A stretch of 63,976 nucleotides of DNA, filler included, from Octopus bimaculoides (taxonomy: Eukaryota), in the NCBI RefSeq assembly GCF_001194135.2. It is 5 parts of 5 records of this genome, joined end to end, with 100 filler letters (N's around TTAATTAATTAA, not from the genome) between each part and the next. Parts side by side here need not be neighbours in the genome. Positions count along the whole stretch, not along the records: positions 40,714 to 50,822 come from NC_068989.1; 4 more parts are not named here. The stretch is one strand, 5' to 3'. This document shows positions 1-50,822 of the stretch, one piece after another. A program made the translations under genes and the position numbers. The notes beneath the pieces are model-generated. The model was not told where the DNA came from. It worked only from the letters and a program-made list of their open reading frames with translations, and did not search any database. How positions within the stretch are numbered: position 1 is the stretch's first letter; each line of letters starts with the position of its first letter.

Positions 1-373
1 CCTGGCACGAACCCAAACTGCATCTCATCTAAATTGATTCGCTCCCTAATTAGTTGGGCTATGACCCTCTCTGTAACTTTCATAACCTGATCTAACAGCT
101 TGATGCCTCTGTAATTATTTGTATCTAAAGCGTCCCCTTTACCTTTGTAGCAGTTGACTATGATGCTGCTACACCAGTCATAGGGTATGACTCCTTCGTG
201 TATCACCTGGTTCGTAATACGGGTGACTAGGCTATAGCCAACACTGCCAGATATTTTGAGCATCTCTGCAGTGATTCCTGATGGGCCGGGGGCTTTCCCG
301 GTCTTCATACTCTTAATTGCTTTATCTACCCTGGTACTATCAACTCGGATAGCTGGTCCCTCTATTGGGTCGA
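1..373 (-). mobile_element. RTE-clade LINE fragment (N-terminal part of the reverse transcriptase), running off the window start
   Basis: Stop-free minus frame: VDPIEGPAIRVDSTRVDKAIKSMKTGKAPGPSGITAEMLK...WCSSIIVNCYKGKGDALDTNNYRGIKLLDQVMKVTERVIAQLIRERINLDEMQFGFVPG. Contains the KAPG.SGI, NYRGI.LL and QFGF motifs of non-LTR RTs. Confidence 0.92.
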
Positions 374-39430: not shown

Positions 39431-41177
39431 GTGTGTATTTGACTGTTCCCCTCTGTCAAGCAAATGAAAGGCAGTCTCACACACACACACGCACACACAT
39501 ACATACACACAATCACACACACACGCGCTCACACACACACTCATGACATACCAGCCCTGTGATAAAAGACGTCCCGTCCATAAACATCCTGTTGGTATAC
39601 ACAAGAGGACATTGTTTAATGATTGATCCACGAACGAATGGAAAAAGAGTGTCTACGTGGTCACCCAGCCTGCAAAGACCAGCAACCAAATCTTCCTCAA
39701 AATCATGTTCTACTTTCTTAAAAAGAAGAGAGAGAGAGAGAGTGAGTGAGTGAGAGAGTGAATGAAAGAGAGAGAGTGAAAGATAGAGAGATGTCGTTGG
39801 GAAGCAAGCTTCTTACCACACAGCCACGTATACGAAATGTGAAGAAGACGCTGCGGGTGAAAATAATGAACGGAATCTTTGCTATTTATTCCCACGTCTA
39901 GTCTCATTGGGCAGACCTAGAATCAAAAAACAACTGAAGCCGATGACAAAGGAATAAACGATTTATGTCATGGAATTCATTAGCTTACAACTGTTTCTGC
40001 TATTATATGCAGAGGACTCATAGTCAAAGTGTCTGAGTAACATCTTATAGCTTCATCGGAACTTCGAATATGAAGTGCAATCTATTTGGGAAAAGGATTG
40101 CTTTTATAAATGTTTAATATTCGCAGATTTTGGTCGTCAAGATCGAGAGAGAAACATGCGAGAGAAAAATTACTCGAGCGAAACTCGACAAGCCGTCGTC
40201 GACATGTTCAGACACTTAAAGCTTCATTTCCACGAACAGAAAGTATATTTCTTGCAGCTTTCATTGCTCAAATGCGCTTTTTTTAAATATATATATATTT
40301 CAAGCAGCATGCTGTGCCTATTATAGATCTGATCCATCTGAGCTCATTTTAAAAGGGTAAAATCAATATAAATTTAACGACTACGTTATAAAGTAGTCTA
40401 CAAAGAAAAACAAAAGAAAAAAGACATTAGAAAGTAAAAATTGATGTTTATTTTACCATAAACACTGGAAAAATACCCTCAAAATGAGGATGCTAAAAAC
40501 AGGATTTTATTTCCAACTTAATATATTCACATTGATTTCAAATTTTTGGCACAAGGCCAGTAATTTCATGGAGGAGAATAGGTAGATTAGATCGACTCCG
40601 GTGATCAACTGGTNNNNNNNNNNNNNNNNNNNNNNNNNNNNNNNNNNNNNNNNNNNNTTAATTAATTAANNNNNNNNNNNNNNNNNNNNNNNNNNNNNNN
40701 NNNNNNNNNNNNNATATATATATATATATATATACATATATATACATACACACTCATACACGTATATACGTATATATATGCGTGTGTGCGTCGCCATGTG
40801 TCAATATATATATATGTAAATATCGATGCAAATTTCTATAAAATTGGTATTAGAATGTTAAAAATTATTCTGTATTCCTCAATAGAAATGCAGCGAAGCA
40901 CATCCACGCTTGATCAGTTTATATAAGATGTACAGTGTAATTAAATTTAGATGTCTTTTCAAAATTAAGTTTACATTAGAGTTATGTGTTTAGGTATACA
41001 CACCAATGAATATAGTTTACATAGCTATTTTTTTAATATTCTAGTGCATACAGTGTACAGCACACACAAATATAGACACACATGCAAGTATATATGCTTA
41101 TTTATATATGTATGTATATGTATATATACATGCGTGTATGCACACAAACATATATGTATGTATACACACACACACAC

Positions 41178-41272
<95 letters not shown>

Positions 41273-41327
41273 TATATATATATATATATGAATATGTATA
41301 TGTACATACATATATGTATGTATATAT

Positions 41328-42801
41328 GGTGACCTGTAATTTGACTCCTGGTAATTCAACACCCGGTATTTTGACTACGGTAATTTGAATCCCCGGTAAT
41401 TTGACTGCCATTCAATTTCATTCCTGGTAATTTCATTCCCGATATTAGAAAACAGTAAAATGTTGAATGAAGATAAAGTACAGTAATACGTAAAAAATAT
41501 TACTAAAAGCTTCAAAAATGATCATGCTTATGAGCTATTTCTCGTAAAAATTCCAACTTATTTTCGGCTCAATAAATATGTGCAGCCGTTTGTTTATATC
41601 TTTATACTTTCTTTTGGTCTAGCAGATCTCACTTCGATTAAATTCAACCTTCCTCAGTTGTGCCAAGTGCTTTTCACTTTTCAGTGCAATAATTAATTTC
41701 CATATATTCGGATGTGTGTAAGTTAATGAACTTTGTAGTGCGTTGTGATATCCCTCTAAATGGTTATTAGTGCGAGGCACATTCAATTCTATTCTAAAGC
41801 GGACATTTCAACTATCAATGGGAAATAAAGAAGATCTTCGTTGTTTAATTCCTCTACCTCACGTGCATCATATGCACGATAATTCAAAGTAGGACACCAG
41901 TTCTTGCGGAAGGTCGTCGTCATCTACAAGATCTTTGATTCTGTTAATCACATCATCGAGAGAAAGAAAAGCCAGCGTTGAAAAACATTTGATTTTAATG
42001 CTAAACTCATTATCATGATGGTATATTTCCTTAGAGCCAAATTCGCATACTTTTCTGTACACATTTTGAAATAGATGAAAAAGACAACAATGAGATGGAA
42101 GCACTACGAAACACTGATAAAATGCTATTAATGTGAGCTATTTCAAAATCCATCATAACATTTCAGGGCTCAGTCCTTGACGTAATTCATTTAGTTTATT
42201 AAAAAAGCAGGTGTAAGTTTCTTGATTTTTATTTAAAAGTAATGCAAACAATCGCGGAATACTGAATGAACCGACTTGAATATGAAGCGTGTACAACTGA
42301 TAAAATACAGTTGGGAAGTACTTAAAAGTTCCATCACCTGCCCAATGTTTTACATTAAATAAGTCATCAAGCCCTTTATCAGTTGCAAGCTCAAGTAATC
42401 TGTCTACATTCGTTTCGCCACTATCAGACTGCAAGAAAAGTTCGCCACTATCTCATCTCATTGGCTATCTCCTTCAACAACAGTAACGAATGAGGCAAGG
42501 ATAGAGCACATGTGAACATGTAAACTCTTTAAATAAGACACCCGATGACTGAAAAGATACTTTCAGTTAACCAAATTAACACTGTAAATCAACAACCGAA
42601 TAGGTGACTGAAAAGATACGTTTAGTTAACTGAATTACCTTGTAAATCAGCAACAACGACGATTATAACAACAACAATAGCAACAACAACAACAACTTTC
42701 AGCGTTTCATGTACTTATTTTGTTTCTAATATTAAGAGTGAAATTACTGGGAATGAAATTGCCTGGCAGTCAAATTATCAGGAGTCAAATTACTTAGAAG
42801 C
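41328..42801 (-). mobile_element. MULE (Mutator-like) element with TIRs and degenerate transposase
   Basis: Minus-strand motifs WAGDGTFKYFPTVFYQLYTLH, LFALLLNKNQETY, MMDFEIA, FHLFQNVYRKV and PRTNNHLEGYHN. Both ends are built of inverted gtaatttgactcc/gtaatttcattcc units (41328-41455 vs 42725-42800). Confidence 0.9.
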
Positions 42802-42978
42802 ATATAAATATATATGTACACACACATACATATAAATACGTATGCATATAATTAGACTATGCAGCAAGCATACCTGAATACTATACACAACTAGTAATAA
42901 GCAAATATATATACTATATATATAATATATTTAGTATATATATTATATATATACAACATACATATATATATTATATAT

Positions 42979-43121
<143 letters not shown>

Positions 43122-43689
43122 ATATATATATTATATTATATTATATTAAGGGTGTTCTGTAATTTGAATGAGTATAAAATATTAGTTGAATAGACGCAGA
43201 AAACCACGCGCGTGTTATATTTTCACCGTTTTTCTGATAGAAGCAGAATGTCAACTTGCTTCTCTTTTAATATGTAAGTGTTACATAACAACGTAAGATT
43301 ATATATATCATAAGCGTGCGGTTCATATATGTATGTATGTATGTATGTATGAAGCACATTAGAGGCACAATTCTTCTTTGTGTTGTAATCGTTGCATACA
43401 TAAACATAATTGGAAGTGTATAAGTTAAGTATATTGAATATATGCAAAAAAATAATGTGAATTACTGAAGAATTCTATTAAAAGCATTGTTAAATAGTAA
43501 TTTAGTTGATGAATATATTTAAAAAATTGCTGAGTTGCAAGAATATTATTTGCACAAACGATGCTTTAATTTACAATTATATTAATATTTGCTCTTCAAG
43601 AGCACACGTGTGAATTAGTGATGTCGCATTAGGAATATAAAAAAAATACTACAAGAAAAGATTAGATTTATTCACAAATCAATCAATAA

Positions 43690-44450
43690 TTAATCACATA
43701 TTTTTATGTTCAATCAACTTCAGTCTATTGACTGTTAATTCGACTCAACTCTGAAAAATGATGTCTGATTGCCGATTTGATCATTCCATATTTTAGAGAA
43801 ACCATCAGCCAGATGATGATTATATAGTAGTTTCCGTATATTAAATAGTCATTTGATTGTATACCATAGTTTCTCAATGAGGTTCAGGTCTGGTGAATTT
43901 GAAGCTATATTATTAACTTACTTTTGTTTTCTTTAAAGTAACTCTTTATTTTCTTTGATGTATGCCGTGAAACATAATTGATCGAAATCATCTTTTCCCT
44001 ACAAATCTATAATCTCTCATATGATTTCATAGGCAAATCATCAAATGCTGAGATGTAATCATAAAATTTGTAAATATCCTTATATGATTCTTTATTGACC
44101 TTCTAATTTTCTCTTTTTATCTTTGGCAAATAATTTTGCTCTTATTTGATCATACGACATTTTAGCAGTTTCTAGTTGTGTACAGCCTATATTTAGATGT
44201 CAATCTTAGAATGTTATGTGTCTATTGATTTTTGGTGTCGCTTACTTTTATACCGCTTACCGAGATAGGAAACCTAGATTTATAGATGTGTACCTATAAT
44301 ATATAAGAATATTAACAACAAATGACCAATTTAAGTCAAAGCCCAGTTTTATGTTTGTCCAATCACTTCTCCGGTATATCCATTTCATAAAGTAATTCTG
44401 ATTCGTTTGGCTACTTGTATTTATAATAATCTTCTTTCAGAAATGTTAAT
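43690..44450 (-). mobile_element. Highly degenerate Tc1-like transposase
   Basis: Minus strand reads VSRHTSKKIKSYFKENK...NSPDLNLIEKLWYTIK, the SPDLN.IE.LW motif. Confidence 0.65.
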
Positions 44451-44571
44451 CTAACAAGTTTGCTTTACTATTTAGCTCTCAGATTTTAACTAGAGACCTC
44501 AAGACATTTTCCCTCGACAATCTAAATGTTCTACAAATCCACAGGCATATATATATATATGAGTATTATCT

Positions 44572-44605
<34 letters not shown>

Positions 44606-44978
44606 ATGTGTGAATGTGTGTGCATGTGAGCGTGTGTGTGCGCGAGTATGTTTTTAAATGTCTGTTTCGCCATATGTTAGAACGAGTAAAGTGATTGAGA
44701 CCATCATATTTGTTATGTTATGAATGCTTATACACTAAACGTGGTATCAAACAATTTCTTTATGCATTCAATAAAACTTAACCTATTTATTCACCGATTT
44801 ATTTGAAACAGGGTAATTCTAAGTCAATCTTAAGGTGACGATTAAATTACTTCTAAAGAAGAGATGTCGAAAGATTTAAAAAATTGTTATTTCCAAATTC
44901 CAGATTTAATTCCCCATTTCATATCTAACTCCAAAATATATAGAAATGTTTGTTTGATATACGTTTTTCATTGAACGT

Positions 44979-45015
<37 letters not shown>

Positions 45016-45322
45016 NNNNNNNNNNNNNNNNNNNNNNNNNNNNNNNNNNNNNNNNNNNNNNNNNNNNNNNNNNNNNNNNNNNNNNNNNNNNNNNNNNNNN
45101 NNNNNNNNNNNNNNNNNNNNNNNNNNNNNNNNNNNNNNNNNNNNNNNNNNNNNNNNNNNNNNNNNNNNNNNNNNNNNNNNNNNNNNNNNNNNNNNNNNNN
45201 NTTTTATTAAGGACCAATGCATCCGGAGATAGAGAAACTTGTAAGTAAATTATTAAGGATCCAAGGATTTCCAAAACTTACATTAAAATTTATTAAACAA
45301 AATAAAACAAAATAAAACATGC

Positions 45323-45366
<44 letters not shown>

Positions 45367-46239
45367 TTCATTCTCTCATGCATACATTATCCAGTTAGGC
45401 CATGAAATTTACGGACTATAACGTTATAAACACGTTCCAATCTTAGGTTTACTGTTTTTAAGTTTGCCACAAACCCACTAATAAATGATGCACAACGACA
45501 TATCTTTTTCCAAATCATTTTTGTTCTTATACCGACATCATCGTTGTCGTTGTCATAATCGTATAAATAATGTCAGAACGGACATAAACATCTATAAGTT
45601 TACGATGTTCCGGTTCCCCCTCCATCTCCACTCGTGACATAACTTAATTCAGTTAATATACTACGTAGTCAATTATGTCTAATTACATTTCATCAACAGA
45701 TAGCTGTGTGTAATGTTTATTTCAATCACATTTGGAAGTTGCTAAAACATTATATCTTAGTGGTGATATTAAATTTCAGGAAATTGTGCAATTAACACCA
45801 ATGAATGTCTAAATAAAACAAAATCTTTCATAAAAATGATTTTATGAATAAACGAAACAAAAATGTAATACATTATATGGTGTATTTCAGTATGCTCTAA
45901 ATAACGTACACTGGAGCTTGCTAAAATGTCCTCTTCCGAGTTCCAACCAAAGCAAGAGAAATACATACAAGTGTGCAGAAAAATGTTTCCAATACGCATT
46001 AAACTTTCAAATTTCTTAATAACATAAACGGTTATTGGGTAAAGAAACACATTTGGTGGAGTTCTAGTTTAAGCACCCCATATAATCCCGCATAGACTTT
46101 TCGTTATTTTTTGGGGAATTTTCAGTAAATTTTAGTGAATTTGTGTTCTACACACGGGAATTTATGCGATTTAGAAAAAAATGAAAAACAAAAAATTTAC
46201 CTCCTATCCCCTACCCATAAATCGGTTCTTCTTTTATTC

Positions 46240-46461
46240 TTTTACTTTTTCTATTATTTTGTTTCAGTCATTTGACTGCGTCCATCCAGTAGCATCGCCT
46301 TTAGTCGAACAAATCGACCCCAGGACTTATTCTTTTGTAACTCTAGTACCTATTCGATCGTTTTCATTTGCCGAACAGCTAGGTTACGGGGACGTAAACA
46401 CACCAGCATCGGTAGTCAAGCGATGGTTGATGGGAAGACAAACACAGACACACAAACATAT

Positions 46462-46493
<32 letters not shown>

Positions 46494-46650
46494 GCATGCA
46501 TGCATGTATGTATATGTATATAGGACGAGCTTCCTTCAGTTTCTGTATACCAAATCCACTCACAAGGCTTTGGTCGGCCCGTGGCTATACTAAAAGACAC
46601 ATGCCCAAGGTGCCACGCAGTAAGCAAGCCACTTACCACATACCAACTCC
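46240..46650 (-). mobile_element. SINE family B (about 70 bp past the KCNH exon donor)
   Basis: Reads tttcagtcatttgactgcg..gtcgaacaaatcgaccccaggact..gttacggggacgtaaacacacc..ttcagtttctgtataccaaatccactcacaaggctttggtcggcc. Confidence 0.85.
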
Positions 46651-46719
46651 TTCTATGTATCTAATTGATAAACGGCACAAGAAACAATAGAATACTAGGA
46701 ATTGTAGTCGAATACTTAC

Positions 46720-46913
46720 CTTCTCTAAATCGAAAGTTAACTGAAATTTTAATAAGAAATCTCCTGCAAATTCTGGATAAGTTCTAAGGATTTCTTTTAG
46801 TTCTGCAATATCGATTTTATTGATATCACAATAAGAAAGTGGGCGAACTGTATATAATGCTTTTCCTTCTGGTCCTTTATCTCTAATGTCGCCACCAAAT
46901 ATATCGTGTTTAC
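46720..46913 (-). CDS. KCNH2-like: ERG-family (KCNH) K+ channel internal exon: second half of the CNBHD (194 nt, phase 1 to 0)
   Basis: Translation (G)KHDIFGGDIRDKGPEGKALYTVRPLSYCDINKIDIAELKEILRTYPEFAGDFLLKFQLTFDLEK matches hERG GKNDIFGE...GKSNGDVRALTYCDLHKI...[20 protein letters not shown] (recalled). Acceptor atattccag, donor AAG|gtaagt. In frame with the 49407-49559 exon. Confidence 0.96.
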
Positions 46914-47296
46914 CTGGAATATTAACGAAGACATTCGTAAAATATCAACCATTTTGTATTGTAAAGTTATGACGAAAAGTTTTCGAAAAATATAAGTGTA
47001 ACACATCTAATTTAAAGATCAACAGTCGTTGTTAAAATTTGTATTTATTTAGTTTTTTAAAAGTACTTATTTAATATATAAATTAGTTAATTTATATATT
47101 ACAAACAAGAATACATTAAAGATTCGACGAATTTTGGAGTGTTTTCAACTTTTGTTAGCTGGATAACTTGTATATATTAGATTCATCTCCCTTGAATATA
47201 TCAATAAAATAAGAAAATAAATGTTAAACACACTTAGTAATATATCTACAAGCATTCACGCACGCACACACACACACACACACAATCTATATATCT

Positions 47297-47520
47297 TAAT
47301 AATCCTTTCTACTGAAAGCACAAAGCCTTGAAATATTGGGGAAGGGGACTAGTCGATTACATCGACCCCAGTGTTTCATGGGTACTTAATTTATCGACCC
47401 CGAAAGGATGAAAGGCAAAGTCAACCTCGGCGGAATTTAAACTCAGAATGTAGCTGCAGAGGAAATACCGCTAAGCATTTCGCCCGCCATGCTAACGATT
47501 CTGACAGCTCACCGCCTTTA
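47297..47520 (-). mobile_element. SINE family A (in KCNH intron)
   Basis: Near-consensus core and head. Confidence 0.9.
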
Positions 47521-48764
47521 TATATATTTTAATAATAATTTCACTCAGCTTCATATGACAGAGTTTCATGGACGCGTTAAGCAAAACCATCGCATCAGAT
47601 AACAGATTGTTCCTCTGATATCTTATCAGATGGGTCCGTCTAACGCGCAAACAAAACTTCAAGTCATATGAAACTGTGCCAAACTACTATTAAGGAATAT
47701 ATCTAACTCCTAGCAAATGTATTGAGTGCTATTTTCTTTTTTTCGTTCACGCTTGTATTATACATATACGTATATNNNNNNNNNNNNNNNNNNNNNNNNN
47801 NNNNNNNNNNNNNNNNNNNNNNNNNNNNNNNNNNNNNNNNNNNNNNNNNNNNNNNNNNNNNNNNNNNNNNNNNNNNNNNNNNNNNNNNNNNNNNNNNNNN
47901 NNNNNNNNNNNNNNNNNNNNNNNNNNNNNNNNNNNNNNNNNNNNNNNNNNNNNNNNNNNNNNNNNNNNNNNNNNNNNNNNNNNNNNNNNNNNNNNNNNNN
48001 NNNNNNNNNNNNNNNNNNNNNNNNNNNNNNNNNNNNNNNNNNNNNNNNNNNNNNNNNNNNNNNNNNNNNNNNNNNNNNNNNNNNNNNNNNNNNNNNNNNN
48101 NNNNNNNNNNNNNNNNNNNNNNNNNNNNNNNNNNNNNNNNNNNNNNNNNNNNNNNNNNNNNNNNNNNNNNNNNNNNNNNNNNNNNNNNNNNNNNNNNNNN
48201 NNNNNNNNNNNNNNNNNNNNNNNNNNNNNNNNNNNNNNNNNNNNNNNNNNNNNNNNNNNNNNNNNNNNNNNTATATATATATGTATTTACATGTATGTGT
48301 GTGTGTGTACAATTAGCAATATTATGTTCGGATATCTTGGCTGATCAATAGCTCTATCAATCACTGCCACAAAATCTTTTTATTTTATCCTTTAGCATTC
48401 ATTTATGTAAATTTCGTTTAGAGTTGTGCGTTTTTGAAAACGAAGAACTCAACGTAAACGTATGACGAAACACCTCATAAGAGTTATGTAGTTGATATGA
48501 CATTTTATAATTTGGTGTTAAAAATATATATGTAGGAGGTAAGAATTAATAAATGGTGTCGTTGTTTTGTAGCCACATGTCGTACCAGTAGGACTTTGTT
48601 ACGAAAGGATGCAGCTGAACGACTACGGGATATTCATAGACCCTGCAGGTTTTTAACACCAGATATTCACTAATTGCGTCATAATGACAACCACACTGCT
48701 TATAAATGATGTTCGATGCTGGGTAACTATCTGAACATATTTTTATTTTCCCACTTTTCCTACA

Positions 48765-49200
48765 TTTTTTTTCTCTGCTTGTTTCAGTCATTCAACACCG
48801 CTTTAAAGAATTTTAGTCGAACGAATCAACCCAAGTGCTTATTTTTTTTTGTGAAGCTTGGTACCTGTTCTATCAGTCTTTTGCCGAGCTGCTAAGTTAC
48901 GGGGATATAAACTCACTAAAACCGGTTGTCAAGCGTTGGTGGTGGGCAAACACATAATCAGACACACGAACGCACACATGCACGCACGCATACACACACA
49001 CGCAATCACGCACACACGCACGCACGCACACACACACACACACATAAATACGACAAGCTTCTTTTTGTTTCTGTCTACCAAACAAACTCACAAGCCTGTG
49101 GTCATCCTGAGGGTATAGCAGAAGAAGACCTAGTTGCCACGCAGTGGGACTGAATCCGGAACCATGTGGTTGGAAGCAAGTTTCTTACCTCGCAGCCTGA
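48765..49200 (-). mobile_element. SINE family B (in KCNH intron)
   Basis: Colinear with 46240-46650. Confidence 0.85.
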
Positions 49201-49406
49201 GTTTATGTAAAATCAAATGAAACTTCCACATTGACATTTGAACTACCAAACATAGCTGCAGCTGCCTAACTTACTATCATACATACTTTGACCGTTTTAT
49301 CTGTATTATAATATAACAGGGCATCTATAGTATCAAACGATTAACTTTGCGAAAGATACACAACGTAAAAATCATTGTATATTTACCGAAGGAAATTCAT
49401 ACGTAC

Positions 49407-49559
49407 CTAAAATTGCCATGACTATATCATCTTTAGATATTTCTATAGATCCCGACGCAATAAAATATATGGAGTGTAGTATATCACCTGGGTGTATTAA
49501 TGTGTCCCCCGGAGGGGCATGCGTCGACCTGAATTTCATAGATAAAACACGTAGGCAAC
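49407..49559 (-). CDS. KCNH2-like: ERG-family (KCNH) K+ channel internal exon: start of the CNBHD (153 nt, phase 1 to 1)
   Basis: Hand translation of the minus strand gives (G)[50 protein letters not shown](G). This is about two-thirds identical to h[55 protein letters not shown] as I recall it. Acceptor ttattccag, donor TTAG|gtacgt. Confidence 0.96.
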
Positions 49560-49572
49560 CTGGAATAATAAC

Positions 49573-49622
<50 letters not shown>

Positions 49623-49660
49623 TATTATAATGATAATAGTGATGATGATGAAGATAATAA

Positions 49661-49874
49661 TGATTTCAAATTTTGGTACAAGGCCAGCAATTTCGGGAGA
49701 AGAGTATGTCGATTACATCGACACCAGTGTTCATTTGGTACTTATTCTGTCGACCCCGAAAGGATAAAAGGCGAAGTCGACCACGGAGGAATTTGAACTC
49801 AGAAATTTAAGACTTATGAAATGCCGTTAAGCGTTCCGCCCGGCCTGCTAACGATTCTGTCAGGCGCCACCTTC
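49661..49874 (-). mobile_element. SINE family A (in KCNH intron)
   Basis: Core and head present. Confidence 0.85.
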
Positions 49875-50779
49875 AGTAATATTAGCAACGGTAACAAGAA
49901 CAGCAACAACAATACTAATAATGATAATGATGATGATGTAGAATTCACAGAAAATATTAAGCTTAAATAGCATTTAATATATCATTTATTACAATATAGA
50001 ATATCTAATGAAACTCATACAAACACAAGCACAAACACATTCTCACGAACACGCACAAACATAACTGTATGATGTAGTGCTTAAGCAATTCGAAATACGC
50101 AGATATTAAAGTTAAATATAATGCATCTCATTCACTTGCAAAAATTCACATGCAAAATGCACACCCACGTACAATATTGCGTAACTTGTGGGATAGGCTA
50201 TATCGGATGAAGAGAACGAAAAAAAAACAACACATCAGTAATATTTCAAATACTCATTTCTTCTACAGTTGTTCCAATGTTAATTATTCTTGCGTAGGAA
50301 CAAATACAATTAAGGAATTATAATTATTTGTAATTTTATTTATAAAGCATGCATGACTCACAGCGATACTACAATAAATTTGAATGATATGGAAAGGGAT
50401 GCCATGAATGTGAATGTATTCAAATTCACAATACCATTGATAAGGTGTTTCTTACGTGGACGATAATTAAAATTATGTATAATTATAATTGCCTAATTGC
50501 ATTTGTTGCTGATATATTACGTAGCAGTTATTGGAACAAGCTGTCAGAAAAAACGGATATTTTGACACACACATATAATAAATATATGTATGAGTAGGTG
50601 TGTGTGTGCGCGTATGTTTGTGTGTATGTATGTGTGTGTAGTATTATATGAGAGCCGTAAAATATATCAAAATATGATTTGCATAGAGCAACCATTATTT
50701 AATATCTCAAGTGAACAGCCTCGCTTAAGCGAAACTCAGGGTAGAATGTCATCTTCGATATGCATGTATATGCATATAT

Positions 50780-50822
<43 letters not shown>

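Follow-up and report, generated by a model that had tools for sequence, protein, structure and literature searches.

Two spliced exons of a probable ERG-type potassium channel gene in genomic DNA of Octopus bimaculoides

In KCNH channels, the cyclic-nucleotide-binding homology domain (CNBHD) sits after the C-linker, below the pore, and its beta-9 strand enters the pocket which, in true CNBDs, takes up cAMP or cGMP. This filling of the pocket is known from the structures of hERG, ELK and EAG channels, and the strand reads Y-N-L in ELK and EAG, against F-N-L or F-D-L in the ERG type. The pharmacological importance of ERG channels in humans is a matter on which the exons described here have no bearing. 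The closest solved counterpart of the octopus locus is the CNBHD of human KCNH2 (hERG, Kv11.1; residues ~734–864; 6syg, 2n7g, 5va1), and the second-best solved relative is that of an arthropod protein, Anopheles gambiae ERG (AGAP007709, PDB 4l11), which aligns over the same 113 residues. The CNBHDs of ELK (Kv12) and EAG (Kv10) channels (PDB 3ukn and 4f8a) belong to the same fold family and share the intrinsic-ligand principle, and score 30–40 bits lower.

The window is a stretch of 63,976 nucleotides of O. bimaculoides DNA, filler included, of which the piece at positions 40714–50822 (10.1 kb) was analysed. Two exons, A and B, were located on its minus strand (Table 1) and join in frame, as the first-pass annotation had proposed. 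Together they comprise 347 nt, which, read at a frame offset of 2, give 115 codons with no stop, and each is preceded by a pyrimidine-rich tract and AG and followed by a GT donor (GTACGT for exon A, GTAAGT for exon B). With slashes marking the exon boundaries, the reverse complement of 49407–49559 and its flanks reads ...TTATTCCAG/GTTGCC...TTTTAG/GTACGT, and that of 46720–46913 reads ...ATATTCCAG/GTAAAC...GAGAAG/GTAAGT. The 5′ end of exon A (GT) completes a codon (xGT) that begins in an upstream exon and precedes the 115 residues, while the codon at the junction of the two exons is split as G/GT and encodes Gly, making the intron phase 1. The joined peptide consists of 51 residues from exon A followed by KHDIFGGDIRDKGPEGKALYTVRPLSYCDINKIDIAELKEILRTYPEFAGDFLLKFQLTFDLEK. 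Exon B completes the beta-roll of the CNBHD with its second half and goes on to encode the C-terminal helices and the intrinsic-ligand strand, F-D-L. Directly upstream of the exon A acceptor lies a long (ATT)n microsatellite (49580–49640), which effectively doubles as the T-rich tract of this 3′ splice site.

Table 1. Exons and splice sites of the octopus locus (positions in the window) and structural matches of the joined peptide (positions in the 115-residue query).
Feature	Position	Strand	Description
AG acceptor of exon A	49560–49561	minus	T-rich (ATT)n tract before acceptor, 49562–49640
Exon A	49407–49559	minus	153 nt; CLRVLS...VMAIL; aligned to hERG residues 750–800, first half of CNBHD beta-roll
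Phase-1 intron	46914–49406	minus	GTACGT...CCAG; nominally 2493 nt including a 496-N gap; SINE-like repeats, GT/CA microsatellites
Exon B	46720–46913	minus	194 nt; KHDIFGG...TFDLEK; ends in phase 0; aligned to hERG residues 800–864
Donor of exon B, GTAAGT	46714–46719	minus	conserved in contig L001; donor at equal position in contig L002
Mosquito ERG CNBHD	query 1–113		PDB search; E-value 2e-33; 118.6 bits
Zebrafish ELK			PDB search; E-value 4e-25; 91.7 bits
EAG1			PDB search; E-value 1e-22; 83.9 bits
EAG2			PDB search; E-value 1e-19; 74.3 bits

Both exons are missed by a bacterial-style ORF list because the gene has introns. Among ORFs of at least 60 aa neither exon is present in its true frame, so the earlier statement that they are absent from the ORF list is correct at that length and trivial for a spliced gene. 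When ORFs of at least 40 aa are listed, exon A appears as a 55-aa ORF (49372–49539) starting from an internal Met, and exon B is overlapped only by a 69-aa ORF in the wrong frame. The word "hidden", as applied to this gene, therefore means a spliced gene unseen by a prokaryote-style ORF list and denotes no biological oddity.

Bioinformatics analysis of the joined peptide revealed a Pfam cNMP_binding domain (PF00027; 38.6 bits against a cutoff of 27.5). The top 17 matches in the PDB are KCNH-type CNBHDs throughout (hERG, mosquito ERG, ELK, EAG1 and EAG2; E-values from 2e-35 to 1e-19), and the true cyclic-nucleotide-binding proteins PKG, SthK and CNGA3 rank lower, with E-values of 4e-9 or worse. 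Both the domain and the family named in the first-pass annotation are thereby borne out. The best match is the CNBHD of hERG (E-value, 2e-35; 124.9 bits), to which query residues 1–113 align with no gaps at residues 750–862 (numbered as in the full-length chain 8io4_A, with query 1 at residue 750); 60 of the 113 residues (53%) are identical, of which exon A contributes 34 out of 51 and exon B 26 out of 62. The best matches are not to EAG, ELK or CNG proteins, and the ERG subfamily, also put forward earlier, is upheld by the bit scores of the two ERG structures against those of ELK and EAG (Table 1). The exons are significant singly as well, with E-values of 1e-17 to 1e-36 for database fragments spanning exon A alone or exon B alone.

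In a large protein collection, the named relatives among the matches listed are all of the KCNH2/KCNH6 type, and the closest of those listed are molluscan KCNH6-like proteins from the gastropod Nucella lapillus and the bivalve Mactra antiquata, with 62–66% identity across the exon junction (best values of 63% for Nucella and 62% for Mactra in the collection search); taken by themselves, these relatives point to a mollusc as the most likely host. Unlike in the octopus peptide, the loop following DIFG contains short insertions in these two proteins. The Nucella fragment leads from C-linker sequence directly into ...GASPG/CLRVLSLKF, where the slash marks the beginning of the part matching exon A. 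Query residues F111-D112-L113 align with F860-N861-L862 of hERG, so that the F-x-L ligand strand is found at the same position, reading F-N-L in hERG and F-D-L in the window; Asp as the middle residue of this strand also occurs in three database matches (P0001, P0005 and P0018). The segment GKALYTVRPL of the exon peptide lines up by eye with GKSNGDVRAL of hERG. In HCN2 (RRTASVRA), the Arg-Thr of the phosphate-binding cassette would stand at the site holding Ala-Leu in the exon peptide, and this replacement would be consistent with an absence of nucleotide binding. An AlphaFold2 model of the 115 residues, built on a 43-sequence alignment, is of low confidence (mean pLDDT, 55.8) and carries no weight in the assignment. 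The CNBHD is the gating domain in the cytoplasmic C-terminal part of the channel, and about 88% of it is covered by exons A and B together.

Variants reported in human KCNH2 include c.2398G>C (p.G800R), c.2398+1G>C, c.2399-2A>G and c.2592+1G>A (PMC10264754). These HGVS names place a human exon of 194 nt at c.2399–2592, extending from base 2 of codon 800 (Gly) through codon 864. Exon B is the same as this exon in length, in both phases, in its start and in its end: in hERG numbering, the Gly split between exons A and B is residue 800, and the last codon of exon B is 864. The intron at 46914–49406 thus occupies the exact position of the human intron at c.2398/2399, and the 49407/46913 junction proposed in the first-pass annotation coincides with it to the base. 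Since the 194-nt exon and the phase-1 intron at Gly800 are common to the octopus gene and human KCNH2, both are very old.

The preceding boundary in human KCNH2 is at c.2145/2146, as indicated by c.2146-2A>G (PMC10264754). From c.2146 the human exon continues through this region, whereas in the octopus gene the codon aligned to Gly749 is split by an additional intron. The same intron is present in two other invertebrate genomic contigs, of which L005 contains a 153-nt exon like exon A, with a cag/GT acceptor and a G/GTgag donor, and L002 has the same acceptor as exon A (aaaaag/GTTGCC); the additional intron is a feature of the invertebrate lineage. At the other end of exon A, 51 of the 120 best database fragments listed cease to align at query residues 51–56, that is, at the Gly800-equivalent intron. 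In contig L002 (674–1195), the CNBHD exons are fused and lack this intron, with the outer splice sites kept; it has been either lost or never gained in that lineage.

For comparison of exon B with its counterpart in a related species, a contig of 1001 nt (L001; run SRR11869390) was aligned to 46671–47338. Within the exon, 189 of 194 nucleotides (97.4%) are identical, against 78% in the upstream and 70% in the downstream intron flank, and the splice sites are conserved. All of the five differences fall on third positions and are synonymous, with 0 non-synonymous changes (pS 0.127, pN 0; 39.3 synonymous and 152.7 non-synonymous sites). The probability that all five would be synonymous under neutrality is about 4e-4. 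Exon B is under purifying selection, which counts against its being part of a pseudogene.

The two exons lie on separate contigs joined in the scaffold across a run of 496 N (47776–48271), which makes the length of the intron nominal and the adjacency of these contigs presumptive. The run falls wholly within the intron, so that the reading frame of the exons is unaffected. Another N gap of the piece is found at 45016–45201. (TA)n/(CA)n microsatellites flank all of the N gaps and both ends of the piece (40714–40790, 45016–45201, 47776–48271 and 50760–50822); the assembly was apparently broken at simple repeats, as is commonly seen where breaks occur inside a single scaffold. Adjacency is favoured by these microsatellite edges, by the order, strand and phase match of the exons, by the indel-free alignment to hERG 750–862 across the junction, by 65 of the 120 best database relatives listed, which span the junction, and by contig L002, in which the two exons are fused.

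Only 1263 nt of the piece lie upstream of exon A (above 49559), and about 6 kb lie downstream of exon B. No further KCNH exons, and no match to the PAS/eag domain or C-linker, were found in the piece by tblastn with 120 retrieved homologues. Similarly, phmmer against the PDB, including full-length hERG, gave no KCNH match for the minus strand of 49560–50822, 43600–46719 and 40714–43700; these flanks were searched as three-frame minus-strand translations at E ≤ 5, and the plus strand was covered by the tblastn search with the 120 homologues, the ORF list, and the repeat and RNA scans. In the 1263 nt upstream of exon A, the minus-strand search of the PDB yielded no match to S1–S6, the selectivity filter, PAS or the C-linker, and the query 49560–50822 returned only leucine-rich-repeat noise from poly-Leu/Ile. 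In a tblastx comparison of contig L002 (4.5 kb) with the piece, exons A and B were matched and no others; this contig carries its next exon about 70 nt past its donor. The only recurrent additional tblastn match (46375–46458) was rejected as low-complexity, being a Cys/His-rich microsatellite translation matched to "CLQADICLHLNR". The first-pass annotation had likewise failed to find C-linker, transmembrane or C-terminal exons, and tblastn, phmmer and tblastx all gave the same outcome. For the C-linker and transmembrane exons this is explained by the shortness of the upstream stretch; a divergent downstream exon in the piece could escape the search, as the distal C-terminus of ERG is poorly conserved.

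Based on these results, exons A and B are very probably neighbouring internal exons in the coding region of a functional voltage-gated K+ channel gene of the ERG type (Kv11, KCNH2/6/7-like, Drosophila seizure-like), transcribed from the minus strand. What is established comprises the exons with their splice sites and homology, the conserved gene structure and the purifying selection on exon B; the designation of the product as a channel is drawn from the homology of one domain, with two exons in view, and is accordingly predictive. Because the introns here are kilobases long, the remaining exons, for the PAS domain, the S1–S6 pore region, the C-linker and the distal C-terminus, would lie beyond the 10.1-kb piece. 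By analogy with hERG, the domain would be a CNBHD that does not bind cyclic nucleotides, the ligand pocket being filled by the beta-9 strand (F-D-L here, F860-N861-L862 in hERG). It may dock on the PAS/eag domain at the N-terminus of an adjacent subunit, and such docking would stabilise the open state and slow deactivation. This kind of gene is already known: the exons form an ordinary fragment of the conserved ERG family, not novel in kind, and their value is mainly for annotation, as they identify the piece as nuclear animal DNA with part of a conserved ion-channel gene.

Several other explanations were weighed against that of a functional ERG-type gene. The exons might represent a dead, unprocessed fragment of an ERG gene, a partial duplicate or pseudogene lying outside the working channel gene, as the lack of neighbouring KCNH exons in the piece and the transposon relics downstream could be taken to suggest. 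However, neither exon has a stop in frame and the splice sites of both are intact, exon B has accumulated only synonymous differences from the related species while the introns diverged by 22–30%, and missing neighbours are expected where introns run to kilobases and only 1.26 kb of sequence lies upstream, which makes this reading very unlikely. A processed pseudogene is ruled out by the introns at conserved positions. A little probability, equally small, attaches to a mis-join of the scaffold at the N gap, which would have brought together exons of separate loci, such as a pair of ERG paralogues: the gap between the exons is of estimated length, and no retrieved contig spans it, L001 stopping at 47338, short of the gap. 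Yet the exons follow one another in the correct order on one strand with matching phases, they are similarly divergent from the ERG references, and the gap has microsatellite edges, as has every other break in the piece.

An assignment to ELK (Kv12), EAG (Kv10) or a lineage-specific KCNH subfamily instead of ERG seems highly improbable. There is one domain to judge from and the assignment was made by scores, but ERG scores of 119–125 bits stand against 92 for ELK and 74–84 for EAG, the alignment to hERG is gapless whereas that to ELK places 115 chain residues against 113 query residues and so implies an indel, and the named relatives among the matches listed are all KCNH2/6. The rest of the gene lies outside the view, which leaves room for a non-channel gene that captured an ERG-like CNBHD by domain shuffling; this is scarcely credible, given an exon structure identical to that of the human channel gene, the high identity to channel CNBHDs, and no other domain detected nearby. 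There is likewise only a slim chance that the locus is a rearranged or domain-shuffled gene, or a lineage-specific ERG paralogue with altered gating marked by F-D-L and the extra intron.

Beyond the ERG-type exons, the piece harbors several repeats and relics of mobile elements. A decayed MULE-type transposase relic, interrupted by stops, is located on the minus strand at 41583–42452 (DSGETNVDRLL...NVPRTNNHLEGYH); its match to Pfam PF10551 (E-value, 1.8e-5; 25.5 bits) is just below the cutoff of 27.6. A stop-broken scrap of a Tc1/mariner-like transposase (43738–44175, minus strand), with SPDLNLIEKLW at 43864–43896, has a weak match to DDE_3 (E-value, 0.16) as its sole Pfam hit. Two SINE-like repeat families were also observed, family A at 47352–47507 and 49708–49863 (80% identity between copies) and family B at 46300–46621 and 48812–49145 (67% identity). 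Each exon is flanked by one copy of either family, and both sets share their orientation and the arrangement B–exon–A; the spacings to the exons differ, so the copies look like independent insertions and not a segmental duplication. Of the family-B copy below exon B, a part (~46540–46650) aligns at the orthologous place in contig L001. No tRNA genes were found in the piece by ARAGORN. About 39 Rfam miRNA matches obtained at a relaxed threshold (mir-3149, mir-297, mir-1277 and others; 41060–41340, 46438–46530, etc.) were discarded, as they are far below gathering scores and lie on TA/CA microsatellites. Lastly, an AT-rich stretch at 50248–50562 is 66% self-complementary over about 320 nt and is possibly a degenerate palindromic element.
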